Shown piece after piece: positions 4,701-32,646 of a stretch of DNA of 64,000 nt. The stretch spans positions 37,262,001 to 37,326,000 of the forward strand of contig CM060731.1 of the NCBI GenBank assembly GCA_030704615.1. The letters are read 5' to 3'. A program made the translations under genes and the position numbers. The notes under the pieces were generated by a model. The model made no database searches and had not been told where the DNA came from. It saw only the letters and a program-made list of their open reading frames with translations. Numbering within the stretch: the first letter of the stretch is position 1; every line of letters begins with the position of its first letter. This DNA comes from Takakia lepidozioides (Eukaryota > Plantae > Bryophyta).

Positions 4701-7586
4701 GATGGCTACGTTGCATGCCATATTCAAGGCCTTTCACATGGAAGTTCACTAACGTAGCAAAAAATGTGTCATGCTTGATATACTTCCAATGGTATGAGCG
4801 GCTCACCTGTTCTCTTTCTAAGTGCTGCTCTCGCAAGCTCCAGCGAGTCCACAAAGTACCAGTGGGAGGGGACTTGCATTGAGGATTCAAAACACTCCTT
4901 CATAATAAAGGGCACGTCAAACTTTTTCCCATTGTGTGCAACGAGGATGACTGGTCCCTCGCCCTTACGCCGGCCTTCCACAAAGTCTACAAAAATTGCC
5001 ATAACTTCCTTCCATCTGCACAAGAACAAATGTCCATGACCTTGTAGCAGTGTTGGTGATGATATAACATTAAATCTCCTCAGAGCCCCACATAGACTTT
5101 CAAAAGCTTCTCTTCTTGTCTTTTCTAGTTGTTGTGGTTAGGCCATGATAAAGATTTTGTGTTTCCTGCATAAAAATTTCCTTCTCTCTCATAATCAAGG
5201 AGGTCCAACAATCACATAGAAGTTATCCTTCATCCAGACCCACTGTAGATTCAACTCACAGATGAGTGTTTGTGTTGATTCAAGTTTCACCTTGGGATGT
5301 CTTCGCTGTTCACCATTTCAGTAGTTATCTTATGAATCTCTGTAGCTTCCAAAGGCACTGGTTGATCGGGGTTCACAAAAGTTTGAAAAGTGCTGCAATC
5401 TCCGCCTGACAAATCACGGCAAGCAATTTCAATGATCTTGTTGGCAGGTGTCAGGAATCCTGTAGTCTCGAGGTCAAAGACTATAATTGTCGTTTCCCGT
5501 GATGTTTCTAGAGAAGATGCAGGGGGGACTTCTGCTAATAGGCCTTGATCAGCTCTCTCCTTGTCAGACTGTTTGTTGGCGACGGCCTCACCATACAAGA
5601 CAGAGATAACCTTTCCTTCAGTTACACTTGTGGTTTCAGCCTCTGGGCTTCGGTATGCTGCTCCTGCTTCGTCCTCTCCGTTTCTAGACTGTCCATCAGT
5701 GAAACCTATCAAACCATTAGACAATTGTGTGAACGGAGAAACAACAGTCCCATTCCCATCTTTACCTTCAACTACAGTAGTTGTGGGCAAAGGTACTAAT
5801 GTGTCAGTATCCCCGACTGGTGCCCCTTCACACTGGGCTGAAAAACATCTAGTTTGTGCCAGAGTCTTTGAAGTATTTGTAGAGCTGTGGAAATCTACCT
5901 CCCTGGCCTGAGCACTAGGTGGCACTGAGGCTGCCAAGCTCTGAACCCAAGATATTTGCAATCCTTTATGGTACACAGGTATAAGATTAGATCGGTTTCC
6001 TATCCCTGAATTATGAACAGATCTCTGCCCTCTGCGTGTGAGAGCATCCAAGCCGAACCAACTGACCAAGCACCCACTTTGATGGCACCTGAAACAATAG
6101 GTGGAAATTACAAGTCAGAATCTCCAGTCAGATTAGTGTAACGCCAACTAAGTGCAATGCATAACTCTGGCCTTACTTGAAGCAGCCTGGTAACTATGAA
6201 GCTCTTAAAGACTACCGTGAACCTTATAAGCTCCTTCCTTTCCTCCTTGCTTTTTCACTACCTCCATCCTTCTTCTGGCCCCAAACTATGCAGCTGCTCG
6301 TTTGTCAGATATGGCTCTAATCTCTAGCCATTTATAGAACCAGTCCATGGCAACAGAGACAAAATAGAGTCAATGATATGCCAACAGATTTCATTATGCA
6401 TGATCTCAAATCGAAACTGTTTCAGGCTATTACCAAAATACTGCCTCATAAGCTTTCTAGCTGTATGTGAATTGAACTATGCTAAAATCACAATTTTATG
6501 TTTCAGATAGTACCACCAATGACAGTTCACATTTCCTATTTGGAATGCGGAGAAACAGGCCCTTGGCAGACAAATAACAGTGATCATGCAAGGCAAAAAG
6601 TTGGCAGTTTGCCCATGAACTTGTACAAACAGACACTGATCACAAATGTGATGTGACGCTTAAATAAAATTACGCAGTTTCACTCGAGGTGATAATGCAT
6701 GGCTAAGCGCCAAGAATGCACAGTGTCTTGGTATAGTTTCACAATCGTACAATAGTCTTTCGCACTCTCAAAACCAGGTTTTTCATCATGAGCTTTAAGA
6801 TCCACGCCATCAAAAGGAAACTGTTTTTATTTTGGCATTTTGCTCTTCTTGAAATGCTCTTGGATTATACACAGAAGTGTGTGTCTACTACAATTCCTCA
6901 CATCCAGTGTAGCTTTCAGTGAGTCGCTCCTGCCTTGTGTGTACTTTCTCCTTACAATACATTAACCTACAACTAATAATCTGACCTTCGACAATACTGT
7001 CAACGCTTACCTTAACGCTAACTCGACCTATCCTGACTATCTAGACAAATAATCTGACACTTTGCAAGCAAAGTTACTGCCAGCCTTTCATTGCTAAACT
7101 ATGGACAGCGAAAAATTGCAGGATGAGATCAATCAGCCCACCCTTCTTGCCCCCTCTCAAACACACAAAAGACAGTAGCACTTGCCTGAGGTGCCTCTTA
7201 AGCAAAACACATGGGCCACGTCTGAGGACATCAGAACACTCTGTAGGGACAAAACGGAACCCCAGTCCACTGCCCTGTTCCAAACGCGGCACGTATGTCA
7301 AATTCTTCAGACAGCACTGCATTTTTGTCTGAATTGTCAAACCAGCTGAAAGTCTTTCCTGCTTGCAGCCTACAACTCCTGCCACAGATTCAATATGTTG
7401 GCCCCGAAATCGTCCCCCGAATCCCGTGTCAACTTCGCCTCTTGTAGTCTTCCTGCCAAAGTCGCCACTGCCCGTCCCAGCACCATATCTCAGGCCCATT
7501 TGACTGGTAGCAGCCATTCTGGTTAGAGAAGAAGCAAAGCAATGTCGAGGCCATCTCTGGCTCATTCTCGCATTACCTTGCAACAC
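1781..7586 (-). CDS. DEDDh 3'-5' exonuclease (DPD1-like) fused to MutS domain I; spliced, 3' end probably beyond the window
   Basis: GT-AG exons about 7586/7520-7078, 6088-5291, 5015-4807, 4576-3249 and 1852-1781 join in frame. Exo motifs: VFDLETTG, VAHNGKKFDVPF, FVDSL, HRAGVDV. MutS-I motif: SPMMRQYVETKRQRPKFLLLSRVGDFYE|AFFEDAERLAEVCSIRL. The start codon is uncertain. Confidence 0.85.
1960..2110 (+). mobile_element. Degenerate tRNA-derived SINE (intronic)
   Basis: A-box-like TAGCCCAGTGG and B-box-like GGTTCAAAG at tRNA-like spacing; no cloverleaf evident. Confidence 0.35.
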
Positions 7587-9339
7587 CGCATTGTCTTAGG
7601 AGGTAAGTTTCTCTGTGACTCTCTCAACATGTTCCATTCCTCTTCAGCTGTCTCCACCAGGGATTGCATCTTGGCCGAAATTTGCTAGTCCTCTCTCCAG
7701 AAATCAAAGACTTACCAAGACCTTCGTTCTAAATTATTTAGAAAGCAGCCAGATCCTCCAACCAGCTTACCGCTGTCAGATTATGGACTGCACGCAAAAG
7801 ACCTTACTTTTTCACATGCTCCACATGATGGGCCGACGTTGGCGTATTTGTGAAAACAATTCCAGCTACAGCCTACTTCTCTTCAACTAAAATGCGAAAG
7901 ACCAGCCTTTAGATAACTATTTCGAAAGAGCAATTTGTAAGAGGCATTGGAAGAGAAAGAGAGAGACGTAACGAAACATCACGGAATGAAACTAATATTT
8001 CCAGAGCTCCGAAACGAATTGCCATCAGACTACTGAGCTGAAACACATCTGAAGACGCGTGTTTTGTTGGAGAGGAAGGTGAGAGTATGGAACAGCGTGG
8101 AATCTAAGACAGTTCAAACTTGTTTGTGACCGCATATCCGGGGCTGGTCCGCAGGATTCCCACTTGACATCATTTGTTTCTAATAACGTGTTCACGCACC
8201 ACATCTCCTGTAACGTGAGGTGCTTGTGTGGTGGTCCCTCTGCATATGAATTCCAGGTTCTCTGGTAAAATAACATGGTACTTCAACTCAAGTTCTTGAA
8301 GCAAACTTTTGATACACCAAGAATGTGGAGAACAATCAGAATTCATCATCACAAGGGAACATTGGATGGGGTGGGATGATTAGCTTCATGTCTAAAACAC
8401 ATCATTGAAAAATGATCACCAACTAAACTTTGCAGTATGGTAATGTAGGTTGAGATCCAAATGATAAGGAGCAAGATTGCAGTCTGAAATATTTTCAATA
8501 AACATTCACACTGCTCAGTCACAATGAAAAGGCCATTCCTGACAGTTGATTGTGAAAGAGTTTGTAGTTCTTTGCACCTCATACTGGCCTTGGCCACAAG
8601 ATTGCGAGAGCAAAACTGTAGCCAAAGGGTCTCTCTCTTCCACTATTTGTTTGACATTGGAGCCCACCGCCCTTTCCAACCAAAAGACTGGTAGACTGGA
8701 TCCATTGACTGGAACCAAAACTAGATTGTTGGCATGCCAGGACAGCTTATCAAGACACATAACATGCGAAAGCATCACTTTTGCCACCCCAGACATCATT
8801 GACATCGGCTGCCGAACTTTGGGACATGAGGGGATAAAGATGCTTTCAAAAAGATCATCTTGGGGGTTCACAAACTCCTTCGAACCCGTGGGTACAACCT
8901 TTCTATAAAGATATCACGAGTAGTTGCTAGGAACAACAGCTTCCTCACATGAATCTTGTTGCCTTCAAATAGCAGAGCAGCGCAGGGGATGATAAAGAGC
9001 CTGCTCCCCAACAAATCGGAACGAAATTGTGTACAAAGATGCTATTGGTCGACCTCACTGTTAATCCGAGGGTGTGCAATCCCTGGCCCAAAAGCCTAAC
9101 CCAACCTAGCTCTGAATCATGCTCCATCTAAAAGCTGAAGCAATGCATTCCGCCCTCCTGTAATTTCGAACAAACTACTGTGTTCTGGAGAGGAGATCCA
9201 GCCAGCAGTGTAACTGCAGGAAACTCTGCAGTATGTTTGACTGACGAACACTGCGCGCAGAGCTCCCATTTCTATATTCGACATGAAAATATGAACCAGA
9301 CACTTTCGGTGCTGTTGCTAGTGCAACACAAGTACCCCA

Positions 9340-12300
9340 TTACTCACCAACGGTCATACCAAACCCAAACTTGTAGTCCTTCTTCCAATGGTCAATCTGC
9401 CAACACAATAGCGGACAGACAAGGGGGTCCACAACCCAGAACCTCATCAGACTTACATTCTGAAACATACGATGTTGAACAGAAAAAACTAGGAAGTTTC
9501 AAGACAGCCAAGCCAGTTAACTATGATCCTCCTCCACGACCTCTTTCTACTCTTGTCATGGCTCTATGTCCATGACAAAGGAAAGAAGGACACTTAACTA
9601 TGATATGAAGCCAGATGCAAATGGCATCTCATCTAATATGAGGTTAAAAGGATAAGGTGACGTATTGAATGACCTCAACAACAAAAGTTCTGAGCTCATG
9701 AGTTGCCTAACTGAGGCTGACACAAACTCAGACTCGTGTCTTCAAATTACCAGACAAAAACTGAGGACAATGGGGACTAATTTGTCACCTCATTTCAAAA
9801 GCATAATATGTTAAGTACAAGTTGCAAGCAGTTTCAGCTAGAAGCGATGATAACGCAAGACATGTGGTTTCATTCACAAATCTACAAAGTGTACAAAGTT
9901 ACCGAAAGGAACCAACTATGAAGAAATGAAGAATCCCTGTTCTGTTTTCGAAGAACTATATACAATATTAAGTTAAATAAAAAAAATACAAGGAAAAAAG
10001 AAAACCCATACATTGGCACAATCAACTACTGGGGTAGGGGGTTCGATGGAAATAGAAAAACTGACCTCTGCAGAGAGCAAAAAGTTGACACCAAGATTCA
10101 GCCTTTCTTCCAAATATGCAGCTATGCATCCATTAGTATCTAACCTTCCCCTCAAGCGGCACTGCACACATCACAATGCCTCCCATTATTAGCAACAGAT
10201 CTGAGGATGGTCAGGCAAGCAAATAAAACACTGCCTTTGCAAAGACAATGTGGGAATAAAGGGCTCATGTGACCTGGGGACTAACCGCAACAAAACTCTG
10301 CAGACTAGGTCACAACATTCAGCTGTAAGTTCCCGACCTATTGGAGGGAAGGTTAACATAGAAAAAAGAAATAACATTGCTCATCAAACGAAATAACCAC
10401 AGAACTTAGGAAAGGAATATTTGTGTACCTCCTGAGGTTTATCTTGCTATTTTTGGAATCCACAGTATATTACCTGGCGAAGCAGATAGTCATAGCCAAC
10501 ACTGGTAGATGCCTCCTTAGTATTCCAGTTATACATAAAATCCGATGCCAGTGATACCTGGAGGCCCACATCATGCACAAACCCTCTACATTACCATCAA
10601 AGTACCCTTTGCAACTCAACCATCACCAACCCTTCCCAACTCTGGCTGCAAGAGTAGCCAAGAAAGTTTCGAGGTTGGGAGAAAATGGATCTCCTTGAAA
10701 GTGTTGGGTGCTGCTGAGGTTTGAGTAGTTACAAGTGCCCTGGGAAAGCAGCTTAACATAGATATTGCAAGTCAGCAATATGACAGTGATCCTGCCATCA
10801 CAGATCTGTACACGACATGACTACCAGATCTGGCGTTGTCAACTAATGTGCTATTTGCAGTTACTGGCCAGAAAGTTAACCTCACATCAGTTATAGCAAT
10901 AGGATTACCTTCGCAAGATCCATGTATTCTCCATCCCCAACAGGAGGCACTACCAACAGGGGGAAGAGGCTCTTTTTGGTGCTGGCTCCAGTTGATTTCA
11001 TCCCTCTCTCTCTCTCTCACAGTGCATTTCAATTCTCTTGTTTCTTTCTTCCTCTTGTCCCATAAGCTCTTTGAGCTTCCAGCGGAAATTATGAAGTACT
11101 ATTTCATTTAATTTCTTATTTCTTTCTTCCTTGTTCCATAAGCTCTTTGGGCTACCCATGGACAGTGTAAATTACCATTTCATTACTCTCTTTCTTTCAT
11201 TCCAGTTTCTCCAGACTGGGCACAGGGTCTATGGTCCCAAGGCTGCGACAAACTGCCGTAAACAGTCTATGGTCTCAGGAGTACATTCTTCTTTTATTCC
11301 TGAAACCCTAAAGAACGACCAACCAGAGCTCCTATTTGCACAAGTATCTACGGAAGCATGTGCCAGTAATAGGTGCCATTACCAAAGCCTCTATTTTACA
11401 CGAAGAGAAATCCACTTTAAAGAGTCCTTTAGAACATAACAAGTAAGTCTCTCTGAATGCACTGAAAAAGGCCTACAGCTGAGAACAGCACTCTTGTGCA
11501 AGTTCAAGAGAGAGGAAAGCACCTTGTCAGAGACTCTTTGCACATAGGTCAAGGACACAATGCCAGTGCTTGCAAATTGCCCTGTTGCTATCTGCATACA
11601 CCACTCTTTTGAGCACAGGAACACAAAAGGAATGAAAGTGTCCAAATAGGGAAATGCAATGTTGAAAGATGTTCGAAGTCTGGACCCAATATCAACACAT
11701 TTTCCTCCAAAAACCTCTCTACCATAGCAAGGACTGTTACACAAATTTACCCACGAAATTCAGACGAAAGGCCAACCATGCTTTTTTGAAGTGATGAAAG
11801 AGTGTGAGAAAGAAAGTGGAACAGGAGGGAATATAGGACACACATACCACTTTATCAGTGTTGTAGCGGGCAGCCAAGCCAATGCCCGACTTCCGCTGAT
11901 GGCCCAACCAAAACCCTTCTCCTCCAAGAGCCAAAGTTGATGTCACACTCTGTACCCAACTCCCTTCTCTCTTGTAAATGAAGATTACTGTTTTGTGATT
12001 TAGAAAAAGGTGCCATACAACTTGAGATAATTAGGTCCACTGCAAAGTGATACCAAGAAAAACCTGCTTTTATTGTACTGTCTGTCAGGGCATGGGATCA
12101 GAAAAGAGAACAGAACTGTCAGAGGAATGAGACACGTTTCAGCATGACAGCAACACTGAACTCCACATTGCAAGTAGTTTACTCAGGAAGGCGAGCAGCA
12201 ATAAGATCAATAGATGGCATGACTTGAGCTACCGTGAAAGATAACAGGCACGGCCTTTGGCATTGGGTACAAACCTGGATGTAGTTCACCCCATAAAACG

Positions 12301-14937
12301 CATTGTTTCCCATCTGCAGTTGGGCTTGATAATCCCCTCCCTGCCCAGATTCCACTGTAAATCACTAACTATCACAGAAATTGAAAGCACATAACATATG
12401 ATAACAACCAAAGACTACCTCCACAATGAGGTTTCAATTAATTCATATGTAAAAGTGAAAGCCTAGGAAACTCTGAACTGACATTTGAGAGGTAAACCAA
12501 AGATAAAGTGAGACTGCCACATCCAAGGTAAACAAGCTTTTAAAAAAAGAAGGCAAATACCCACGACAAAAATGAAGGGAAGTCACCGTAAAGGTGAAAC
12601 AATAAAAAAGGAAGGAAACCAGAAAGAACTCCCCACTGACCAAATCAGATCCTGGGCACAGGCGTGCAGAGTTACTTAGGATTAACAATACTTCCAATCT
12701 AACCACCCTTACAAACTCAGACCTGCACACTGACTGGTTCAGCAAACCCTGCTTACAATGTAGAAGTTTGAAACCCCACATGCAGGCCCCCATTCATTTA
12801 ACTAAAACCCTAATATCCTTTTGTCATAAAGTTTCAAGAACTGGTGACATAACCCAATAGGATTTTTCCACCTTGCTGCAGCCCTACAATCACCCTTAAA
12901 GAATTTAGTGTGCGATGTTGAGTAACTGGTTACTGCTTGCAAGACTCCAGAGAAAATCCCTCTTTCCATCACTCAACGTGCTAATGCTTCAAAACATTAT
13001 AACACTAGAAGAGGGACACTGAGAAGACAGTCGGGTCTATGAGGATAAAGTAGCTACCCTGTAGTCAAAATGGACCATGCCTTGGGAAAAGTGAGGCTCA
13101 TTTGTGAGCTGCATACCCACGGCCACCACCAAGAGTCTGTTAGATGAGAATGCTTTTTGAGTTCATGAAGATATCTAACAGATAACATAAGACAGTAAGA
13201 AACCTGAAAATACTGGTTGTATCTAACTGCTGGTCCAAATAACAACCACAAAGATTTCATCTTTGAAGCCTAACGATGAACGAACCTGAGCATTGATTTT
13301 GACAGAAAAGCGATCGTTAACATCGTACTTAATGCGGGCACTCATGCGCCCATCAGTTAAGATGCGCCCAATCATCATCACCATCTGCTGCTTACCCTGA
13401 AAGATAATAATAGTAATTTAGGCATCAGTCTCTAGAGAAGGAAACATACAACTACAACTAAACTAGTCTATGCACCATGCATATCTGGTGGGGAGCAGAA
13501 TGAAGGCCTCCACCATCATCAAGACACCCCAGCAGTGGGACAAACATAAGAGCATAGATGGACGAGGCTTCACAGCTTCCCTCCAGAAGTCCTCTACCTT
13601 TGCCAATGCAAGAATACACCACAAATCGGACTCCAGGTCTCCAGCTTCTGGAATGACCTCAAGAGTCGAGAGTTTTGAAAAGCTACAGAGGGAGAGAAGA
13701 AGGGTTAAGAGGATCAAACCTTCTGATCTATGAGGTTAGCACCAAACTCGTAATGGGCAGCAGGGACCTTAATAGTCTGAGCCCCCTGTGAGGGCACCTC
13801 CACAGAGCCCATGAACAAACTGCACCCAAGCATTTCATTTGTCAGTTCTCCCCTCTGGACGAGCTTGACTAGGTCTGATATTGGACGTGGACAACTTCTG
13901 ATCGGGATAGGTATACTAGGGTAACGCCATTGTCAGCTCACTTCCAGTGCACTGGTAGCATTGCATACACAGGTACATGCTAACATTTCTGCCAGGCATC
14001 TCGCCCATGACATTCAATCACCAATTTCCCAAAGAATAAGACCAAGAGAAATTCATCAAAACGGATAAGGAGTCTAATTCGGAGTCTCATATCGGATAAG
14101 GAGTCTAATCCGTCTAAGGAGTACTAAAGCACCGATTTCTCCCAGTTAAGTCAGCCCCAGAAAACCTCACAGCGGGTGATCTACCACAAAGAACTCATGA
14201 AGATCTCAATGCAAGTTCTCACCGACATGCATGCAATATGTTCCCTCTCACTGCTCAAAATGCAGATAGCATTGAATGAAAAGGAAGGGCTTAGATACGG
14301 ACAGTTGTTGGGAAAGAATTCCACCAAAAATGCATTACTTACTCCTATGCAATGATGGGCTTATAGTTCCCAAAGGGCAATTCAGATGGCAGTTGACTGA
14401 TTAGCAGAGCTTATACAAGAACTTAGGCAGTGAAACAAACAATCCTTCTGACCTGTGGCTGAGTGAAAACTTCTGGTTAAGAGGCTTTGTAAAATCAAAA
14501 CGAAGGCCTTCAAACAGCTCCGGCTTGAGAGAAACTAACCACATGAGCCCACACACACATTTTGTCAATCCAGGTGCGCCCCAGCCTCCAGCCCCCGAAA
14601 TTTGCACCTACCAAATACGTGTCGCAGGTGCAAACGCCCATCACTCAATCAGTGGGATCCAGGATCCCACTCACCCATGTCCAAGCACAACATCACATTA
14701 TCTAATCCCTACTCTTTTTTCACTTCCCTATCCCACCTGTACGAATCCCACCTCTATCAATCTCTGTCAAGCTGAGGCAAGGTACTTACTAATAGCTTCG
14801 CGTTGAATCTCTTCATACTTGACAGGGCACGGTAGGTTAAGCCAGTCAACATCGTCTCCCTTCTTCCCTTCTTGTTTCCCTGATGCATCTGAAGATTTGG
14901 CTGGAGAAGCCGATGCATAGCTCACGGCTCCCCCCAT
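9340..14937 (-). CDS. TOM40: Mitochondrial import channel TOM40, 11 exons
   Basis: Exons 14937-14790, 14534-14453, 13819-13720, 13384-13286, 13108-13058, 12340-12275, 11949-11848, 11591-11523, 10557-10474, 10161-10066 and 9396-9340, all GT-AG. Diagnostic peptides: [65 protein letters not shown]. Confidence 0.96.
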
Positions 14938-15097
14938 GGCCTCCTCAATCTTCCTGCCACAGACGTAACTGGGAGGGCGCTGGGGCAAGGGGCGTGGCAA
15001 ACCAACAGGAAGCCTGCAAAGAAGGGTACTGTCGGGTAACCGAAACGATGCCGGATCCCTGGCGGCGGGTTGCAACCAACTGTGCCTGCCCTTCTCT

Positions 15098-15121
15098 AAA
15101 CCCTAAACCCCTAAACCCTAA
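15098..15121. promoter_or_regulatory. Telo-box motifs (AAACCCTAA) in the TOM40 5' region; matching motifs upstream of RPA43 at 24412-24420 and about 24558
   Basis: AAACCCTAA at 15098-15106 and 15113-15121. Telo-boxes are established plant promoter elements of translation and biogenesis genes. Confidence 0.55.
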
Positions 15122-15254
15122 TATTCTTGTCGCTCTTCCCACGACTTCGAACACACGACCTCAGTGAATCGCCGAATATTCTCTAGAGGTTTAACGATCA
15201 TTCATTAACAATGAATTATAAAACATATGTAGGTAATCAAAAATCTAACTAAAA

Positions 15255-15459
15255 ATCAGTAGCTCAGTTGGTTAGAGGACTGGGTGCCACCCAAATGATT
15301 CTGGGGTCAAATCCTGCTACTCGAGGGATGTGGTGTGCTCTACTCCCCCTTCCCTTGGGCTCGCGGCGAGGTTATTGTGAAAAAGGTTATTTCTCCTCTC
15401 ACTATCAAGGGGCCTGATTTGTGCGCTGTCGCTCCCGGTGTTAATTATTAAAAAAAAAA
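15255..15459 (+). mobile_element. tRNA-derived SINE
   Basis: A box TAGCTCAGTTGG, degenerate B box GGGTCAAATCC, about 150 bp of unrelated body, and an A-rich tail at about 15449-15459. Confidence 0.6.
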
Positions 15460-15517
15460 GATGGTTTCAAAAACCCGAAAAAAAAACAATTTCTAAAACA
15501 GGCAGGACTCAGGAGCT

Positions 15518-15986
15518 TGTGAAGCCTTAAAACAAGCCTGAAGCATATACTCATTTCCTCTCAAGAAGCGAGGTTGCACAACAAAGGGGCGAGCGAAAAG
15601 AACAAGCAACGCGCGAGAGGAGGATCAAACACACGAATCAGGCACTAAGTAGCTCTCATCCAAAACTTGTACACCAAAATCACATATACACCAACACCCG
15701 AGTACACCGCCCTGACCTTGTGTCAGGGCGCCGTCTTTATACAAAAGCCCTAACCATAGTGGCCCGCCGCATGGCGAGGCATCATAGGCCAAAGCCCACG
15801 GTGCTGCCTTGTAGCCCTAGATCTGATGAAGGGCCAGGATCGAGCCACCAGCCTAAACTAACCCTAACCTAAACATCATTGTAACGGATTAACAGCTTTA
15901 TACGCCAAAAAAATATACTATGAATGTGTATCGCCGTTTTGGATGAAACGGGCTATTTCCAGGCTAAGCAAGTATGGGGATTTACA
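15518..15986 (-). repeat. 3' LTR, including a 10-bp terminal extension AGGCTTCACA
   Basis: Matches 23912-24353. In sense orientation it starts TGTAAATCCCCAT and ends TTTTA-AGGCTTCACA. Upstream lies the PPT GGGGGG (16000-16005). Confidence 0.9.
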
Positions 15987-16399
15987 TCTGTGAAGCCTAC
16001 CCCCCACGAAGAATCCTGAACTCCGCGAAGGAAAACAATGATGGAAAATATCACCCTCCACTGCTGGGTGAAAAACCTACCAAGGGAAAACCTGACACCT
16101 GCAAGTTGGGCCGAGAACAAAACCCTTGGTTGGAAAAACCGTGCAGGGAGTACAGATAATGAGATGTCTTAGAAATGTTCTAAGTCCTAGAGAGGTCAAG
16201 TCTGAGGATCCCAAGAGTCATCAGTCGTAAACTAAGACTTAGCCCCTGAGAAGAGAAGTGGAGTAAGCTGAAGCAAATCGCGAAGAAGATCAAGACATCA
16301 CCCCACCGTGCGCCCCTCCACATTGATACATGTAAGATCAAAAACTAGCTCGGAATGCACCAAGTCTGTCAAAGAAACAAGTTCATCCCGCACTTCAGT

Positions 16400-19300
16400 G
16401 TTAAAGCCTTGGGGAAGAAGAAGAGCACGTCGCCCACGTAAAATCTGATAGATCAAGTATGGACCGTCGATCTTGAACTTAGATTTGCATGCATGCTTGT
16501 CATGCTATAATCGAACACACACGGTCTGTCCTACCTGAAACAGGTTAGAATACTTGACACGCTTGTTAAAATTACGGACGTGGGGTAGTTGAGCCTTACC
16601 AATGTTCGTCTTGGCATTATGGATAGACATTGCATGTCGAGCATGAAGATCTTCAACAAAGGTCTCAAGATCAACCGGATCAGCAACAGTAGAGATAAGA
16701 GGGATAGAATGCAAAGGAGAAACATATTTGTGACCATACAGCAACTCAAAAGGAGTCTTCTTGGTGCTAGCATGCACGGCGGAGCGATAAGCAAAGAGAA
16801 TAGGGGGAAGAAATGTATCCCACTCCCTGGTAAGTGCGCCATTCTTCTCCAACATTCAGCAAAGAGTTTGGTTGAAGCGTTCCGTAAGGCCATTGGTCTA
16901 GGGATGGTATGGAGCGGTGGTGGAATGCTTGACACCGAAGTTGAAGCAAACCACCGTGAGGAGCTGGTTACAAAACTCCTTGCCCTAATCCGTTAGTATC
17001 TCCTGATGACACCCATGCCGCATAAGGATTTCATTGAAGAAGAACTAAGCTACAACATCACTAGCCTTGGAACGCAAAGGCCGGACTTCTACCCACTTAG
17101 TCAAGTAGTCGTTAACAACACAAAGGTAGATTCAACCCTTTGATGTGAGTGCGAGGGGTCCTACTAAGTCAATGCCAACACGAGCAAAAGCATGGGTGAC
17201 AGGCAAAGGCTGCAGCTCATACAAGATCCGGGCCCTAGGGAGAGCAATGTTAGCACAACAACCTTCACACTTAGAGATGAACTCGGTGACGTCTCGGTGA
17301 ATTCCCAGCCAATAGTATATCTCTTGGATGCGGGCCACAGTTTTCTTGATACCAAGGTGACATGCATACTAGGAACAATGGAAACGCTCCAATAAAGCAT
17401 TAAGCTGGCTCCGTGATGGCACCTCCAAGTAGCATGGCACTCCCCCTCCTTGAAAAGCTTATAACCTATAAAACGGTGAGTAGACACATGATAGATAATT
17501 TGTTTACGCAATGACTCAGAAAGGCCAGTTGGCGAACACCTTGATTAGCATCGCTGGAGTAGCGCAGCATGTAGCTGATCATTCATGACTGCACTGCAAG
17601 AGGTAGACAATGGGTTTTAGAGAAGGTGGTCTGGAGTGCCTGTACCTATGATCTCCAGCCACGGATACCTTCACCTCATTTGTTACTACCCATGGACAGC
17701 CAAATCAGGCCTTGAGGTTCAAGCCAATAGTCACACCGGACTGCAGCAACCGAATCACAACAAACTCGGGGGGCCTAGGAAAGAGAAGGACTGAAACACA
17801 ACAAGGAAATTCCACCAAACTATCCGAATTTTTGCGAAGCGATAGATCCACCACACATACTAATACACGAATAAATCAACCAGGCTCATCTAATATGCTA
17901 GACCAGCCCCATGCAGCCAATATGCCATGTGAATCGAGGGCCAAGAGTTGCTGATCTGCACAAAGAATGTTGAGAAGAGGGGCATGATTAGGAGGAGAGG
18001 CAGCATCAGCAGCAACAAGGTCATCCAAGGTGAGCATAGACCTGCTGACAGGAGGATCAACCCGCGTGAGTGCATCAGCATTTGTGTTTTCCTTGCCCTT
18101 CTTGTAGACTATATCCATGTCAAATTCCTGCAGGTACATAGCCCATCTAGCAAGTCTGCCATGAAGTTCCCTTCGCTTAACGAGAGCCTTTAGTGGAAGA
18201 TGATCAGTCTCTACCACAAACCGGCTGCCATGTAAATATTGCCTGAAATGCTTCACACCAAAAACCAGGGCTAAACCCTCCTTATCAGATATGGAATAAT
18301 TCCTTTCATGACGATCTAGACGACGAGATGCATAGGCTATTACATGCTCATTGTCTTCTACAACTTGACATAAGATTGCAGAGATGGCAACATCTGATGC
18401 ATCAGTCTGAAGCAAGAAATGTAACTCAAAATTGGGAAACATCAGGATGAGAGCTGAACACAAAGCCTTGCGAAGGATGTCAAAAGCAGCCTGCTGGGAG
18501 AAGGTCCATTCAAACCTGGCATCTTTGCACAACACCTTGATTAGAGGGTGAGCAAGCTTGGCAAAGTTCTTTATGAAGCGCCTATAATAAGAAGCCAGAC
18601 CAATGACAGATTTGATACAATGTTTATCCCTAGGGATAGGAAAGCCCCAAACATGGCAAGATCAGAAAGCAAACCATCTTTGGACAGAATGTGACAAAGG
18701 AAGTGCAGCGCAGGCATGAATAGCTCACACTTCTTGGGCTTTACTTTGAGACCTATAGTGCGCAATTTGCTGAAAACACGCTGCAGATCAGCTAAGTGAG
18801 CTTCAAAACTGGCTGAGTAAACATTGATATCATTGACATAAATTAAAGCACACTCCCAGCGAAGATTGCCCAAGACAATGTCCATGAGACGTTGGAAAGT
18901 AGAGGTGGCATTGCATAAACCAAAAGGCATGGTCTCATATTGGTATTTGCCCATGCGACACACAAAGGAGGTTTTTTCCTTGGCAGCTTCAGTAAGAGGA
19001 ACTTGCGAAAAGCCAGACGCAAGATCAAGGGAGGAAAAAATTGTGGCACCATGCAATTGATCCAAGGTCTCACTAATCCTGGGTAGTGGGTATGCATCAT
19101 TTTTGGTGATGTCATTCAGCTTTCTGAAGTCAATCTTTCTTACCAACCAGGACAATCGGATTGGCCCAAGGAGAAACTGAAGGCTTAATCACGCCAGCAT
19201 CAAGCATTTTCTGGATTTCTTCTTGGATTACAGCACATTCCTTGACACTCTCACGGTAAGCAAATTGTTTAATAGGAGCCCCTTCAGTGACAATGTCATG

Positions 19301-22300
19301 TTGGAGAATATGAGTGCGCCCTAGATCAGTGAATCCCAAACTGAAAACATCTAGATTCTTTGCAATAAGCATTTCCACTTTCCTCTTTTGTCCTGAGGAG
19401 AGAGTTGTGCCCAACTTGATTTCAGATAAGACTTTGGTGAGGGCCGTCTTACCTTCTGGGCTGAGATCAGGGACAGGTGGTGGAGCAACTGCAGTAAACA
19501 CAACAACCTCATTTAAGGGGCCATGTTGGATGCCAATGGCCTCAAGTCCAAAGCCAGCGTGCACCTCTTGTATTTCTACAATGGGCAGAGCAGTGATGCG
19601 CCAGAACCTGCCCCTGCCCATAGCTATTCCAAAGAATTCTACTCTAATCCATGCACCTCTCAACATCACCATCCCTGCCTTGACCCAGAAGGTGGTCAAG
19701 TCTGGTCTGGCCTTCTTGTGTCCAGCTGCTCATTTCCTAGAAGTTGAAGGATAGAGGAGATTGATTGCCCTTAAGCATTGCCTGGTGGCCACTGGTGTTC
19801 TAGATAGAGGATATAGGCAAGAAGTCAAGATCTTGATTGCTAATCCTAAGCGCTTCCCTGTGGCACCCCTGTCCTATCTCTAGCACCAGGAACATGCCAT
19901 TGATATAAGAGTTGAAGATCAGGTTGAAACTTGTAGAAATCATTCCAATTGAGGTTGGAGTGAGAGTTCTGTTGTACCTCCTTTACCAGGGCCTGAATCT
20001 CTAGACAAATTGGCTGTAGCATACCCAGCCTTGATCTTCACTGCTTTCAAGGGAACCACTACTTCATGCCCTTCTCCATTGTTAAAGCAAATGGAGTAGT
20101 ATGCTAAGCTGATGGTGGCACCAGCTCCAGTCATCCAATCAAGGCCTAGAAGAAATTGATCTCCAATGGTGACTATGCAGGTAACCACAACCTCTTTTTT
20201 ATGAATTCTGATAGGAACAGTGACTAGTCCTAAGGGCTCATACCTGGATCCATCTGCAATAAGCACCTCAATACCTGTGGCAGGGCATAGTTTAAGACCA
20301 AGAACTCTCACAACACTTAAAGGTATAGTAGATATAGTGCATCCAGTATCAACCACACAGGGAAAGCTGAGCTCGTGGATATGGCACTGGGCCATGAGGG
20401 GACTGATCTGTCCCGGTAGTCTGCCGACTAAGAGGACAATGCAAAGCTTTAAAATTAGTAGATAAAACAGCTTGAATCGGAACAGAAGAAACAGGGTTGG
20501 TAGATGATGGACCTCTTGCCCCCTTCCCAAGAGATCGCGCTAGTTTAAAGGAGGGGAAGAGCCATTAGCTGTCTTCTTGTTCTTGATCAGCTCTGGTAGC
20601 CCTGCTCTGTCTGGACATGCTTCGTCCAGTGTTCAAAAGACCCACAAATGTAACAGGCAGCACGATTGCCCTCATAGGCTTGTCCAGTCTGGATTCAACC
20701 TCTATTGTTACCCCCTGTTGTTCCTTGGCTATGTCGAGGCTGCCATCTCTGTTGATGAGCCTGCATGGCAGCAAATTGAGTGGCCACAGACTCACTAAGA
20801 CTTCCCACAGTATTAGCCAATCCCTGAAGAGTGAAATCATTAGTTTTTTTATGTCTTAGTAGGAGGAACATAGGGTGAGGATGTTGCAGACATGCCAAGC
20901 TCTGAGCCCACTAGAGCTTGAAACTTGGCATGATGTTCCATTGATTTGCTGTCAGCCAAGTCTGCCATTTTAAGATTAATTTTTGCTAACATAGTCTTGT
21001 CATTGACAAAATGACGTCACTGAGCCCAATTCTGAATAGTGGAAGGCAACCCAAGGAGAAAATACATTTTTACCATACGATCCCTCTCTGCCGGGTCTAT
21101 GATATTTTCAACAACAGCAAATTTAAGATCCATATAATACTTCCACAAGGATTCCCCAGGTTGGTAAGTCTTGGCCGAAAGCTTGGTGTTGTTCAAGGTG
21201 GGGGTGTCATGATGCAAGGGCCCTCTAGTATGTCTGCTGCTCTGCCTCCTGCCACGCCTCCTGCCATCGCTGGCCAGTCAATGGGGGCTCTCCCTGCTCC
21301 ACAAGCTGGGGTGCCACCACATCTTGTCTTTAGCCAGTCCGTGGGTATGCATGCTAGCAATATCCCTCTTAGCAGTATAAGATTTGTGTCAACACAACCT
21401 GTGGGAGTGACATCCACTCTTCCCATGAGTGGAATGTCATAAACCCACTTGCAGTCTACTAACCCTGCTGCTCAGCCAAGTGTGGCAATACCTGCTCTCC
21501 CCATGGGCACGGTGGCGTCACGTCTGTCAGCTTCAACTGCTATAGGATCAGTCAGCAATAGTAGTATGAGTTATAATTCTGCATCTAATGTTGGATATGT
21601 GCATGGTAATGCTGCTCCCATAGTTCCCCGCTGCCCTGCTCATGGGTCTGTCCTCCCTGGTCACATCAACCATAGCCTGCCTTGTCATCTGATCCCCCAG
21701 CTGACCACTCAACCTTACCCAGAATATACCATAGGAGAAGACTTTGATAGATATCTTCAGATGTTTGAGGTCATTGCTAGTGTCAATGGAGTGCCTGAGA
21801 ATTTCAAGATGGCGATCTTTAGGATGAGCATGAAGGGACCAGCTCGTGACTTACTGCATGCAGCCATCATGAATGATCCCAACCTCAACTGGGCAACTCT
21901 GGTGGAATGGGCAAAGACTTGTTCAAACCTCCTGAGAGGCCTCTGGATTGCTGACACCATGCACGTTCAACACAGGAAGACTGCCCACATGCATACCCGA
22001 ATTCACAAGCAACAAGTTCCCTCCCCCAAGAGTGGGACTAGGGAAATTCACAATAGGCAACACCCTAGGACTCAAGTTAGTGACCTGGGCCGGTATACTG
22101 CTCGTAGACATCTGAACCAGACCCTTCGATCCCCTGGACATGAATAGGATGGGAGGGCAGAACGTTTAATTCCCGAGCCAGCGTAGGCTCAGTCCGTCTA
22201 GCCACCAAGGCCTCATCACGCCGATCATAGACAGAAAGGCCCTCGAGGGTGGCTATCCCAGACCCCTCATCAACTAATGTAATACCAGTTGGGGACTCTA

Positions 22301-22350
22301 CAACTGCTCCCATCGTCCCAACATTCAAAAATTCATCATCACTCACCATT
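16400..22350 (-). pseudogene. gypsy gag-pol with frameshifts, stops and an inverted gag segment
   Basis: Protease CVVDTGC (about 20350); RT FSSLDLASGF, MPFGLCNA, IYVNDI (19155-18571); RNase H LQTDASD (18535-18060); integrase FARVGIDLVGPL, LFAYRSAVHASTKKTPFELLYG (17400-16500); zinc knuckle about 20660. Confidence 0.9.
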
Positions 22351-23010
22351 ACCTACCTGCAGGTTGTCCGATCCCTCATTCACTTCTACTACACTTCCGG
22401 CCAGCGGCTCTCCTAAATTATTCATGGACCTTTGTCTTCCGGATCTCAACCAAGTAGTTCTAGAATCACCTAGCAAGAAACGAGGTTGGATTGGTGGCAT
22501 AACCTTTAAGCAGCAGGGATGTGGAGCGTGGGCCGAGCACTTGGCGAGCTGTCTTCTGGAACCCAAGTGGAACAATACACCACCCTCAGCACCTTGTGTG
22601 ATTGTAACTCGTAGATCCCCAACGCCAGCCACTCCCAACCATTAGCTCCTTTAAGCCAAAAACCAACGCGGGTGGTGTCACCCTCTCTCCAGGTGCACGA
22701 AAGCACAGTCGAGTTTGAACAGTCACTCAATCTCTCAAACGCGCTCGGGCGAACCACTCGCTAGACCATCAAGTAACTGTGAATAAGTAGGTATCAAGGC
22801 GCAGGGCCGGAGGTGAAACGGTAATGCTCTCAAGATCAAAGCCCCCGTGCCTTGTAACATCAACGACAACCAACTTTGCCCTACCACACCAGGGCCATGA
22901 TGAAGCTCTGCACTTCGAACACTAGAAAGAAGTAGATACAAGCCAATTTCCAACCAGGTCAATTCACGATGGTTCAGAAAATGCGACTTGATTGTCCTGG
23001 ACGGTAGACG

Positions 23011-23709
23011 CTATTCGTTGCGTAGCTCAAATTCGCGCTTAGCAAGCTGTCTGGCTTTGGATATCACCGCACCAGGCTCAAGCAAAGGTCGCGTGAACAG
23101 GGCCTCCTGATGACTGGTTAGTGCAGCAAGATCACCTACAACAGCTCTCTCTACACGCTCAAACCAAATCTGATCTTCGTCACATATTTCACACAACAGA
23201 TCATCTACTTCCTGCGACAATTCAATGTCTCTCTCCAATTCAGTTGCTTGCTGCCTACTTTCAAAATATTCAGGGCCTGAATCCACAAAGTTGTCAAAGT
23301 TATAGTAGTCCGGGTCACAGCTATTTAGAGAGCTGTCAGACTTCTCAAACCTTGGCGACCACGCCTCTGCCTCCCCCAGATTATCATAATCACTACCACC
23401 AGGAGAACCCAATGAAACAACAAGGGCTGGAACGCAAGCAACAGGCTCAGGAAGTGGGGACGGTGGCAAGACAACATTGCCAGACCGCGCGCCGTTGGTA
23501 GTGTTAGCAATAGCAAGAATGTCAGCAGGGTGAGAAACAACAGGAGGAGCAACAACAACAACACCAGCAGAATGAGAAGTGGCAGCAGTGTTAGCCTCTA
23601 CACTAGGATTAACTTCGATAGCAAGTGCCACGCTAATCTGAAGAAATTGGCTCTCCCCCTCTCTGCGAGCTACACAAGACAAGTCACGAACGGCAGCCAT
23701 CCCCTGCAA
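23011..23709 (-). CDS. Extra ORF in the 5' internal region of the gypsy element, function unknown
   Basis: 232-aa low-complexity, acidic ORF between the PBS and gag, on the element's sense strand; no motif recognised. Confidence 0.35.
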   Translation of the reverse strand: MQGMAAVRDLSCVARREGESQFLQISVALAIEVNPSVEANTAATSHSAGVVVVAPPVVSHPADILAIANTTNGARSGNVVLPPSPLPEPVACVPALVVSLGSPGGSDYDNLGEAEAWSPRFEKSDSSLNSCDPDYYNFDNFVDSGPEYFESRQQATELERDIELSQEVDDLLCEICDEDQIWFERVERAVVGDLAALTSHQEALFTRPLLEPGAVISKARQLAKREFELRNE

Positions 23710-23894
23710 TCACACCCCAATGCACATCGTGAGACGGCAAAATCACAGCAGCAGGAGAAAATATGGCAAAGCGAGGAGCCGCCATCGATAACACGCATTA
23801 GCGAACCACTTAGGCAGCAGGATGTAGAGCAGATCCCGCGAAAAGACCTAACTGATCCTGACAGTGCGGGCAGGATCCACCACGCCTAGAGTAC

Positions 23895-23911
23895 CCGACT
23901 TCTCTCCACCA
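23895..23911 (-). other. Primer-binding site, tRNA-Ala-like
   Basis: Sense sequence TGGTGGAGAGAAGTCGG is complementary to a tRNA 3' end ...CUCCACCA, typical of tRNA-Ala. Confidence 0.7.
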
Positions 23912-24353
23912 TAAAACAAGCCTGAAGCATATACTCCTTTCCTCTCAAGAAGCGAGGTTGCACAACAAAGGGGCGAGCGGAAAGAACAAGCAATGCGCGA
24001 GAGGAGGATCAAACACACGAATCAGGCACTCTCATCAAAAACTTGTACACCAAAATCACATATACACCAACCCCCGAGTACACCGCCCTGACCTTGTTTC
24101 AGGGCGCCGTCTTTATACAAAAGCCCTAACCATAGTGGCCCGCCGTGTGGCGAGGCATCATAGGCCAAAGCCCACGGTGCTGCCTTGTAGCCCTAGATCT
24201 GATGAAGGGCCAGGATCGAGCCACCAGCCTAAACTAACCCTAACCTAAACATCATTGTAACGGATTAACGGCTTTATACGCCAAAAAAATATACTATGAA
24301 TGTGTATCGCCGTTTTGGATGAAACGGGCTATTTCCAGGCTAAGCAAGTTACA
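23912..24353 (-). repeat. 5' LTR
   Basis: Starts TGTAA (9 bp shorter than the 3' LTR near its start) and ends GCTTGTTTTA directly against the PBS. Confidence 0.9.
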
Positions 24354-24596
24354 AGCTCCCTCCACCGCAGACCTCACAATGCGATTCGCAGATGGAGTAG
24401 ACACATCTCCTAAACCCTAACTTGGTTCAGGATCTCTGCGTTCGATGTCTCTCATCAGTGTGCATGCTACTACTTCACACAGTGTTTGAAGGATTTTTTT
24501 CTTGTGTGTGTATTTAGCAGGTGAGGCGATGTTGTTGGTACAAGGTTGGGATTTCGGTTTAGGGTTTAAAGGTATGGGTTCACGGGAACCAGGGAG

Positions 24597-27500
24597 ATGA
24601 CTCCGGAAATGGCGTCGCTAGGAGTCCGAGATGCAGAGGGAATGGAGGGGTTGAGAGAGGTGAAGGCGAAGCTGGGGGTGTATTTGCATCCGTCGAGAGC
24701 TGCCAATGTGCAACAAGGCGTTCGGGAAATTCTGAATTCTCTCCTTCTGCGGTATGTCTCTCTATCTCCCTCCCACTTTTTGAAGTATACGCATTCTTTC
24801 TTCCTGGGCCTCTCCCTCCTTAACTTCAGGTTGCTTAACGCCCGTATGTTTCGCTAACTGCTATCTATAATCCCTCTGACTGCAGTGCATGTGGAGTGAT
24901 ATTACAATAGCATTTGCATTGTTGGGTGCCAGCGCCCTTTGTCCCCAGAATGTCTTTTTATGGAATTTTGGTTCGAAGTGTAGGTGATGTCAGTGTTTTC
25001 AAATTTCAGAATTGGTCTTGAAAAGTTCAATCCTCAGCGGGAGGAGGTAGTCCGGGGATTGTGGTCTTCCACCACAGAGATTGGGACATTTTGGATGCCA
25101 CCGGCTGATTCGTGCGGAATCACAGCACAGTGGCCAGTATGACTTGGGCCAGACGATATCTTGGTTGATCATGCATTGTTGAATACTATTGAACTTGTCA
25201 GGGTATGCTATCTCTCAATTTCTCTAAGTGAATTGAGAGGAGATTTGGGAGTGCAGGCACAGCGAGGAGTTTGAAGGAGTGGTCCTTGCGTATTTAGATC
25301 CCACAATCCAGGGCCGTACAGGAGGCATTTTGTCCGGTTTGTCCCCGTATTTCCATGTGCACCTGACAGCGACCCTCATCCTATTCTCTCCTAAGGTCGG
25401 AATGACCATAGGTGTGTTCCAATTCATCCTCATTGCTGTCTTCTTTGTGAAGTAGTGAAGTAGATATCTGCTACCCAAAGTATCAAGACCTAAACCATGG
25501 CTAAGCAGGATGGAAACAATTCGGTCACATGGACTGTTGGAACTTCCTTCTGGTAACTGTCAATGAAACATTGTTGAGGACAATCAGTCGGAGCTATATA
25601 ATTGAGGCTACATTGTATTTGGAGCAGAGGGTAAGGTGAATAAAGTGGAGAGGGACTACCTAGGGGTGGTCGTATTAGGGCTATTCAATGCAGCCATTGG
25701 CGTTTCTGATATCCGTGAAGATCTTTACTACAATGAATCGGTACGTCCAATGCTGTTCCAACTTTAGTCCAATATGCTTGGCGGTGATACACTGCATGCA
25801 CATATATGCTCACATCTTAGCGTACATTGAATATGAGGTGCAGCACACTCAACTACAGAGAAATTCAGGGACTGAGGGCGGGAAGACTTAGAAGTGAGAC
25901 TCGATTAATGCATCAATCACCCACTACTTAATTCCTTTGCAAGTCAGAGCTTTCAGCTTTGTCTTGTGGCTCTGAGAAGAGGGGTGCAGTGAGACTCCAG
26001 TAGCTGAAATGTTTTTGCATACCAATCCGTTGTTGGGTTGTATTCTGCTTCATGTTACGCTTGGCAAGTACGGAGAACACATTTACTTTTGAGAGAACCG
26101 AGTGAAGTGACATCCTCTGTTGTGGTCATGTTCCTTTGGTTTGTACAGGCAGGCACCAGGGCATGGATGAGTGAATCAGATGACCAGCATTCCATTAAAC
26201 TGGGCAGCATCATCTGCTTTTCTGTCAAGAGGTGTGTTTATGTTCTCCCCATCTGTCTGTATCTCTCTCTCTTTGTCAATCTCGAGGCTGAGCCAAAAGC
26301 CCAGGTCCTTTGGGGTCTAGTTATTGGGCAAATCACACACAGCAGATTGATGTTTGTGTGAAGGGATTTCTAGAGGATATCTGGAAAACTCGGATCAACA
26401 GCATGTTTCAAGGTAAGTCATACTACCGGCGTGAGCCTCTGACAAAGGTAGTCTCGGTCCCTTTGTGTTCCGCTCAAACTGGGCACGGGGTCAATGGCCA
26501 CAAGGCTACGGCAAACCATTTTTATGAGCACATTCTCTTTGTCACAGCTTACCTGCACGAGGCACTTCGTCTTTGGCCCACATTTGCTCTTCCTTGAAGT
26601 GGTTTTGTGTTGTTCTGCATTGCCCAGTGGGCCCTGAGGGCCCCCTTTGTTTGTTAGAACGTGTGTTGTGTGTGTGTCTCTCTCCCTGGCAGCTGTCCCT
26701 CTGATCTAAGTATAATACCTATGAGAATGTCATTGTTAGAAAATGAGCTTTACATGTTGGCACAAGTTTGAAGTTAGCAAGTCAGACTTTGTTGGCCTGT
26801 ATGACTGAAGTCTCTGTCACTTTCTCCTCTTATTCCCTCACTTGAGGTAAACAGGGTTCAAGCAGTTATTGGTGAGCTAACAGAGCTGCTCTGCAGTGTG
26901 CAGGAATCAGAAGAAATAATTGACATCTGTGGGTCTCTCCAAGGATCTCTCACAGGCTCTGTGGACTGGCTGGCTGCTGGGACTAGACACAAAGAAAGAA
27001 GGCAGACCATCAGTCCCAATAGCAGGTTAGTTTCTATTTTCCCAATCGTTGATATCCACATCACCAAATGAATCGCATAGCATGCATGGAAACTTCTAAT
27101 TCCAGGGTCACTTGTGGAGAGTGGTAGCCACTTCATCCTGTGGCAAATTATGTACGAATTCAATATCAGAAGTGGGCCCTCAAATCTTCTCTGCAATTCG
27201 AAGTGCAGTGTCACAATATGTGCTAACTCAGGTTATCTTTTGCATATCAATTTAGCTTTCCAAAAAGTCTGACACAACCATAAGCAACTTAGTTGAAAAA
27301 GAAAGATCCCATCACAATAAAGGAAAATAAAGAAAATAAAGATTTACAACACACAGAACAATGGAAGGTCAGGAATCTAAAGTACATTCAGGCATATGAC
27401 AAATGGTTTCTTTTTCTTTCTCTGGGATCGATTATAGATCCCTGGAGAATGGAGCCAAATTGTCCAAGCACAACCAAGCAAAAAGGAAGGAGAGGATATC

Positions 27501-31452: not shown

Positions 31453-32646
31453 AAATTCAACCAGCACTCTAGGTTCTAAGCCCTGGCAAGCAATGTGGAA
31501 GGCATGGCATACCTTGAGGGGATTTCTATTTCAGAGAATGCCAATAAACAGACCAGAGTGCTTGCGGCAACCAATCTTTGCCAATTACAACTTGGACTCT
31601 GAAATCTAAGACAAACCCCAAGATGAGCTTTTTGGGAAGGTCAAGGCTTCACACACATTGCTAGCATGCAGATCCAAGGGAAGTTCCTCCCGCTTGCGGA
31701 TGTGGTGCAGGCTGCGGGAGGACAAAGAGAGAGAGACTGGAATACCATTTGTGAAAACATCCCACAGTATATGTTTCAGTTATTGTCGGAAAGCGATGAG
31801 CTAGGCAATACCCCAGCTTGGATGGCCTCTCGGCAAGGGGATGGTCATTCTGTCACACTAGTTCTATCTGTGATTGAAAGAAGGGCATCATGCTTACACT
31901 TCAGAGCTGACTGTGAAGGCTCCCTAGCCTTCCGTGGCAACATTGAACTACATATGCAATACCTCTACCACATTCGGGTGCTGGACTGCGAAGGAAATGC
32001 TAACTGAATTCCACCAATCAATCAGGAAGTCCAGTGGGCTTACCATATCTCATTGTATTGCTTTCTAACTGCCCCCTTGCATGATCTCCAGTTTCATCCG
32101 GGGGAGTGGAGGTGGATGGATACTAAGCACTCCCCCATCTTTGCATATTCGGTGAAGATAGGCTACTCCATTCTCAACCCAGCTTGCTCGTTCCTTTATA
32201 ATTGGCAATCAAAGTGGGATAACCATAAGCTCACTCAAAGAAACTGGGATACCATTTGGAAGGATGTCTGGAGAAAAGATAGGGCCACAAAGATCTCGGC
32301 CTTTCTATGGAAGCTAGCACACAGAGTTCTCCCAGTCAGACAAGCCACCCATGAGGATCACCCAACCTGCACTATCTGTCAATCGCAAATAGAATCAATA
32401 GAACACTGCCTAACATCATGTCATTTGGCCTCTAGGGTGTGGCAGGTGGTCTTATCTTTCTACTCGCATTGGGCCTCACTCCCCTCCCCTCCGCCCTCCT
32501 CCCTGCTTATTCTCAACTGTTTGCCTGGCCATCATCCCTCTTCTTGTCCTGTTTGGGATGCACTAAGAGCACTTACAAATGGAATTTGTGGAAAGCTAGG
32601 TGTGTTTGGGTTTCAAGGGCAAGCCCCCAAGGGGCAGATCGCTTGG
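31453..32646 (+). mobile_element. L1-type LINE ORF2, 3' part (zf-RVT)
   Basis: WKDVW...KISAFLWKLAHRVLPV...CTICQSQIESIEHCLTSC...WNLWKARC. It continues the minus-strand LINE broken at 49317. Confidence 0.85.

Follow-up and report, generated by a model that had tools for sequence, protein, structure and literature searches.

Asymmetric long terminal repeats in a Ty3/gypsy family of Takakia lepidozioides suggest integration through a joined-end junction

According to textbook accounts, long terminal repeat (LTR) retroelements integrate solely as linear cDNA, the ends of which are set by the primer-binding site (PBS) and the polypurine tract (PPT); circular forms are regarded as dead-end by-products. 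A Ty3/gypsy element in a 64,000-nucleotide stretch of the genome of the bryophyte Takakia lepidozioides (assembly GCA_030704615.1, contig CM060731.1, positions 37,262,001 to 37,326,000; hereafter the window) raises the question as to how an element is inserted when its two LTRs do not end alike. Its 3′ LTR is closed by a 10-mer that is missing from the 5′ LTR, and a second copy of this 10-mer stands inside the element, between the PPT and the 3′ LTR. The inserted layout probably arises only by way of an end-joined junction, be it that of a 2-LTR circle or one made by read-around of the reverse transcriptase (RT), which is then cut by the integrase.

The element is read on its sense strand, which is the minus strand of the window and the strand of every feature placed below unless otherwise stated. 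By direct reading it spans 15518–24353, is bounded by a 4-bp target-site duplication (TSD), AGCT, and has the layout A1 / PBS ... PPT / B1 (AGGCTTCACA) / GA / A2 / B2 (AGGCTTCACA), where A is the part common to both LTRs and B the 10-mer. The left AGCT (24354–24357), in front of which the flank reads ...GGAGGG, is identical to the right AGCT (15514–15517), both lying just outside the element ends. The 5′ LTR, A1 (23912–24353, delimited by alignment with A2), begins TGTAA and has ...GCTTGTTTTA as its last bases without terminal B; it stops TTTTA at the PBS, TGGTGGAGAGAAGTCGGG (23894–23911), which is unique in the window and adjoins the last A1 base with no CA in front. On the other side, the PPT GTGGGGGGT (15999–16007, read directly, with G-rich tracts equally placed in the relatives L016, L021 and L022 described below) is followed directly on its 3′ side by B1 (15989–15998), an exact match to B2. 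The 2-nt spacer GA (15987–15988, likewise read directly) lies between the CA of B1 and the TG of A2 in a CA-NN-TG junction, and 12 nt (B1 and GA) separate the PPT from TG. A2 (15528–15986, from the alignment) begins TGTAAATCCCCAT and has the same last bases, ...GCTTGTTTTA; it is followed by B2 (15518–15527), the right insertion end, which has CA as its last letters and lies just inside the TSD. A sequence-only reading of the locus had described a 5′ LTR that adjoins the PBS without a terminal CA (the joint lies at 23912/23911), an extra 10-mer carrying the 3′ LTR up to the TSD, and an internal 10-mer forming a CA-NN-TG junction between PPT and 3′ LTR; all three are found at these positions.

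The alignment of A1 with A2 comprises 433 matches, 9 mismatches (9/442 sites, 2.0%) and 2 gaps; relative to A2, A1 has two deletions, one of 9 bp after TGTAA and one of 8 bp in mid-LTR. An exact copy of the 10-mer is expected by chance about 0.1 times (128 kb, both strands), and copies standing right after the PPT and right after the last shared LTR base are thus not chance. The sequence-only reading had also placed the junction, in RNA, in the loop of a GUGGGGG/UCCCCAU stem; this part of it fails: the predicted minimum-energy fold does not contain the stem, and in its folding the region does not stand out from shuffled sequences (z = -0.38).

The same arrangement recurs in relatives of the element. 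In a tree built from the RT-RNase H parts of 268 protein hits, for which a 261-aa piece of the element served as query and aligned stretches below 150 residues were left out, the query forms a clade with P0151, P0195, P0047, P0198, P0192 and P0071 (support 0.974), with P0141 as sister (0.983); this clade links the element with the loci L016, L021, L022 and L001. The full layout is present in L022, which reads CTGGT / A1 TGTAGCGC...AAAGAT / TGGTGGAGATGCGGGGTAC ... AGGAGGGGGGGG / TAGTGCTACA / TA / A2 / AGTGCTACA / CTGGT and whose junctions are found again in L023 and L025, assembled from other samples, which rules out an assembly artefact. It is also present in L021, which reads GTTAA / A1 TGTAGAGC...TTCTTTG / PBS-like ... 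AGGAGGGTGG / TCTTACA / TG / A2 / TCTTACA / GTTAA. In L016, A1 adjoins the PBS without CA and the other side reads PPT / TAGCCCTACA / TA / TGTAGTGC; in L001, seen on the A/PBS side, the same PBS adjoins a non-CA end. The sequence TGGTGGAGATGCGGGGTAC, closely similar to the PBS of the element, is equally placed in L022, L016 and L001. The 2-nt spacer is TA in L016 and L022 and TG in L021. B1 matches B2 at 10/10 positions in the Takakia copy, over 9–10 nt in L022 and at 7/7 in L021, L016 having B1 only; B itself differs between families, and in each family it is the inverted repeat of that family's own A start. The TSD outside B2 is 4 bp long in the Takakia element and 5 bp in L021 and L022, and the integrases of L022 and L016 score above the Pfam rve cut-off. 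By comparison, L012, which stands outside the clade at similar identity, is canonical, with TG..CA on both LTRs and a PPT that adjoins TG. The suspicion raised along with the sequence-only reading, that the internal 10-mer might be peculiar to one copy, falls away: L021 and L022 have PPT-B1-NN-TG with their own B repeated as B2, and L016 has the B1 side. Asymmetry and internal junction co-vary among the relatives, as that reading had foreseen, completely in L021 and L022 and on the B1 side in L016.

As regards the search itself, the protein collections, queried by word index with the RT-RNase H piece, hold no relative above 58% identity. No LTR pair is present in contigs L001–L004, L006 and L007, and five further loci (L005, L008, L013–L015) are insect env-bearing elements and were not used as relatives. 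In metagenome contigs, a scan for the B-NN-A junction pattern returned zero matches and a scan with a conserved LTR 20-mer returned three chance matches without LTR similarity; a protein scan of viral contigs gave zero matches. Some observations on the relatives stand apart from their layout. At 1756–1765 of L016, in U5 and 11 nt upstream of the PBS, there is an inverted copy of 9/10 bases of the B1 of the Takakia element (AGTAGGGCTA). L022 (12365–18254) and the loci of other relatives carry identical plant-like or algal-like genes (WD40, folylpolyglutamate-synthase-like Mur ligase, LSM) across many JGI metagenome samples of the series 33000568xx, which indicates one eukaryote abundant in that sample series. 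In the Takakia element, the first bases of B are already present, in direct orientation, in the end of A (15528–15545), AGGCTT-GTTTTA-AGGCTT-CACA, which is paralleled by TCTT-GG-TCTT-ACA at 15708–15723 of L021; such a repeat may be a trace of end evolution or may have offered microhomology for joining.

How could B2 come to stand at the right end? In retroviral reverse transcription, the U5 of both new LTRs is copied from one minus-strand strong-stop DNA that starts at the PBS, and the PPT sets the U3 starts. Because A lies directly on the PBS in the family copies, B2 cannot come from U5, and the only templates for it are B1 or the copy of B1 at the left end of the cDNA. The model put forward here has two kinds of boundary, one that would be set by reverse transcription, where the LTR would begin directly behind the PPT and end directly in front of the PBS, and one that would be set by integration, at TG...CA. 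The linear cDNA made by reverse transcription would then have B-GA-A as its LTRs, with AGGCTTCACA-GA-TG, and so 12 extra nt before TG, at its left end and ...TTTTA, with neither CA nor B, at its right end. The right end (A) would first be joined to the left end (B-GA-A), which would create the near-palindrome ...GGCTTCACA-GA-TGTAAAKCC..., and the DDE integrase would cut both strands of this near-palindrome just 3′ of each CA. The two cuts, 2 nt apart, would leave canonical processed ends (CA-3′OH with a 2-nt 5′ overhang), and insertion of these ends would produce the target duplication of 4–5 bp; it is the 2-nt length of the spacer that would give paired cuts the standard processed-end geometry. 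The layout, its family-wide and clade-wide conservation, the identity of B1 with B2 in each element and the DDE integrase are what can be read from the inserted sequences. From these we infer the joining step, either as a ligated 2-LTR circle or as an end-to-end jump of the RT, and the integrase cut at the junction.

Of these two forms of joining, the ligated circle is the more likely. In the other, the RT at the right end would jump to the left end of that cDNA or of a second one and copy B-NN-A as a 3′ tail, no covalent circle being formed; the integrase would then trim this tail after CA and remove 12 nt from the other end, so that the junction would be made by the RT and not by ligation. 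Such read-around predicts the same inserted layout as a circle. In all ends seen the A/B joint is exact, as would be expected of templated copying no less than of end joining; template jumping is known for other reverse transcriptases. It has no direct evidence in its favour, however, and it needs the removal of a long 3′ tail as well as of 12 nt at the opposite end; we consider it rather unlikely. The sequence-only reading had proposed integration from a 2-LTR circle. What holds of this proposal is the joined-end junction, which is supported by the layout, the family and the clade; the covalent circle itself is indistinguishable from RT read-around by sequence.

The joined-end model presupposes that the short 5′ LTR is shared by the family and is not an accident of one copy. 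This can be judged from read contigs of the same organism aligned to 23300–24500, which come from three runs of the same sample and one plant-metagenome run of another study. The unique flank has a depth of 44 and is covered by a perfect 1,994-nt contig, which shows that the runs contain this genome; compared with this flank, depth rises to about 5,000–19,000 in the LTR bins and to 1,500–6,000 in the interior bins, and the family is thus highly repeated. Among the listed contigs of any run, none has an insertion at the A/PBS joint (23911/23912), and the contigs that bridge this joint (records 3, 14 and 21) do so without the extra 10 nt. Conversely, among the loose ends listed from two studies, those contigs that depart from the reference exactly at 23912 (7 in X1, 3 in X5) have AGGCTTCACA next and after it a contig-specific flank, never the PBS. 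On this evidence each is the right end of a copy or a solo LTR, inserted at a site of its own, and the A/B joint is exact in all the ends seen. At the other tip of the LTR, 12–15 contigs per run carry TGTAAAGCCCCATAT (sense) and so retain the 9 bp that are absent from A1. The 9-bp gap is therefore private to this copy, and the added deletion at the 5′ end that the sequence-only reading had called for is dispensed with. In one run, a mixed loose-end consensus in front of the LTR start resembles the end of the PPT followed by B1 (7/10 B positions).

These contigs also bear on the more conventional possibility that an ordinary TG...CA element lost the last 10 bp of its 5′ LTR after insertion and that the 10-mer behind the PPT is coincidental. 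A1 does bear two other private deletions (8 and 9 bp), and the copy, with an LTR divergence of 2% and broken open reading frames (ORFs), is old enough for decay. No listed contig of this highly repeated family, however, has the 10-mer in front of the PBS, while A-AGGCTTCACA ends occur with varied flanks; the probability of meeting an exact 10-mer at just that place behind the PPT is about 1e-5 at most; and the three-part pattern recurs, each time with a B of its own, in two families from other assemblies. Such a loss is very improbable, and the missing terminal 10-mer of the 5′ LTR is, as far as these contigs represent the family, a family trait and not a private deletion, in agreement with the sequence-only reading.

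A solo LTR elsewhere in the window (38426–38893) provides an independent view of the insertion ends. It belongs to a related family, with an identity to the LTR of the element of 74–80% over parts, and has the A-B form; it begins TGTGATGCCCC, has ...CTTCTTTTA-AGGCTTCACA as its last bases and is flanked on both sides by the TSD GCTC. Its right end is TTTTA-AGGCTTCACA, as had been noted from the sequence. Its tips form a terminal inverted repeat, TGTGATGCC / TGTGAAGCC, of 9 nt with one mismatch, from which it follows that B is a true insertion end. This disposes almost entirely of the notion that B2 is host DNA and that the element inserted site-specifically just upstream of a AGGCTTCACA-like target. 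Two extra exact copies of AGGCTTCACA, on the plus strand at 13565–13574 and 31644–31653, could be cited in favour of such a target; they lie outside LTR-like sequence and may be old LTR-tip relics or chance. Against it, the TSD lies outside B2 in four independent insertions (the full copy, the solo LTR, L021 and L022), and B, being the inverted repeat of the A start, varies between families in step with A.

The coding interior of the element is 7.9 kb long. The order is protease (PR), RT, RNase H and DDE integrase (IN), all on the minus strand, as recognised with Pfam and, for the integrase core, with tblastn. The aspartic protease remnant lies at 19943–20539 (Pfam gag-asp_proteas / Asp_protease_2), that of the RT at 18574–19188 (RVT_1, E = 4e-29), and the C-terminus of the RT with RNase H, which is the open piece of 261 aa used as query, at 17879–18661 (RT_RNaseH, E = 7e-36). 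The DDE-type integrase remnant (16637–17395) consists of an H2C2 zinc finger (Integrase_H2C2, in 17135–17368) and a decayed core; tblastn with integrase-bearing relatives covers 17395–16637 at 27–32% identity. All coding remnants are interrupted by stops and frameshifts, and the 28 ORF pieces of the element contain no domains beyond those of PR, RT, RNase H and integrase. Between PBS and protease, the leader and gag-side region (20540–23893) has broken ORFs of unknown type and no Pfam matches; a homologue search with its 232-aa ORF (23014–23709) found no match. At about 3.3 kb, with no gag or other domain recognised, this stretch is unusually long for the gag region of a gypsy element. No tRNA gene matching the PBS is present in the window or in the loci of the relatives.

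With its direct LTRs, a PBS after the 5′ LTR, a PPT before the 3′ LTR and a short TSD, the element has the features of Ty3/gypsy; what it lacks is identical TG...CA LTR ends set by the positions of PPT and PBS. It is a decayed Ty3/gypsy copy from a family with two kinds of boundary offset by 12 nt. Its likeness to canonical Ty3/gypsy elements extends to the PR-RT-RNase H-IN order, a PBS that starts TGG, a G-rich PPT, TG...CA ends with a short inverted repeat and a TSD of 4–5 bp. In canonical elements, however, of which L012 is one, the PPT adjoins TG, the PBS lies 0–2 nt after CA and both LTRs have the same sequence; with respect to the insertion ends, both primer sites of the Takakia element are situated 10–12 nt upstream. 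The A1...B1-A2-B2 layout is shared with elements of the DIRS order (Ngaro, PAT, TOC1), where it is explained by a circular or end-joined intermediate. Those elements have a tyrosine recombinase in place of a DDE integrase and make no TSD, whereas the Takakia element and its relatives have DDE integrase domains, a TSD of 4–5 bp and a B of 7–10 nt only (10 nt in the Takakia copy). No tyrosine recombinase was found in the 28 ORF pieces of the element or in the gene tables of the relatives' loci. That A1...B1-A2-B2 formally amounts to split direct repeats (as defined in PMC8557442) therefore scarcely recommends a DIRS-, Ngaro- or PAT-type element whose circle was inserted by a tyrosine recombinase, which is hardly credible.

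The junction resembles that of retroviral 2-LTR circles, in which abutted LTR ends form a palindromic CA-N-TG at which the integrase cuts to produce processed ends; the spacer of 2 nt corresponds to the standard 2-nt 5′ overhangs. Cleavage of the junction of 2-LTR circles has reportedly also been seen with HIV-1 integrase. The integrase of foamy virus cleaves 2-LTR circles at the palindrome where their LTRs meet (PMC1180852). Such circles were proposed as integration precursors in 1984 (Panganiban and Temin), a proposal abandoned after 1987 (PMC11054761). Retroviruses differ in that only their circles contain such a junction, integration being accepted to proceed from linear DNA; in the Takakia element, every inserted copy permanently carries the junction inside it, and the right end of the linear cDNA would not be usable.

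A comparable LTR asymmetry has been described for Gypsy-7a_cRei of Chlamydomonas reinhardtii. Figure 6A of Craig et al. 2022 (PMC9940879) notes in its legend, without explanation, that the left LTR of this element stops 8 bp short of the end of the right one. The element is active, one laboratory strain having gained 86 new insertions (PMC9940879), and the asymmetry is thus compatible with ongoing transposition. It is likewise a Gypsy element with a gag-PR-RT-RH-IN organisation, and its left LTR is short by 8 bp as compared with 10 bp in the Takakia element; it differs in its length of 15.4 kb and in a PHD finger, which was not detected in the Takakia element. The likeness in the LTR ends concerns the left LTR as described in that legend. 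A literature search found no further paper on this left-LTR asymmetry beyond PMC9940879.

Several points weigh against integration through a joined-end junction. All the evidence comes from inserted copies, and no joined-end molecule has been observed. The integrase of the Takakia copy is decayed. In L016, the right LTR breaks off 31 nt before its expected end, and B2 is unseen. For other copies of the Takakia family itself, the mixed consensus gives a hint of B1, and a minority of A-B-PBS copies may exist, as the read data consist of contigs and listed loose ends only. Lastly, linear DNA is the established precursor of retroviral integration (PMC11054761).

The remainder of the window contains other repeats. 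Arrays of a unit of about 303 bp and related repeats of 80–300 nt, 60–90% alike, occupy 56600–61800 and recur at 44360–45150, with the appearance of a tandem coding or satellite-like block. The segments 40400–41450 and 54800–59130, about 14 kb apart, have interleaved repeat families in common (60–280 nt, 65–98% alike), which suggests duplicated gene or transposon fragments. A 77-nt unit is in tandem at the start of the window (444–597, 869–945) and is found again 26 kb away (26470–26546).

With a linear cDNA that would have no usable right end, and with an internal site at which the ends stand abutted in every inserted copy, the lineage appears to depend on a joined-end intermediate. To the extent that inserted copies can tell, the evidence supports integration through the joined junction. 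The chances are about even that, in an entire plant and algal clade of Ty3/gypsy elements, an ordinary DDE integrase acts obligatorily on the LTR-LTR junction of end-joined cDNA; if this were true, a natural lineage would normally integrate in the way that the discarded circle model of 1984 had envisaged for retroviruses. In annotation, programs built to find LTRs with identical TG...CA ends would misplace the ends of such elements by 7–12 nt or more. The reading of plant extrachromosomal circular DNA (“mobilome”) data, in which 2-LTR circles are now treated as mere markers of activity, would also be affected. The old question of the circle as a precursor becomes testable in a natural system, an active relative of which may already exist in laboratory strains of Chlamydomonas.

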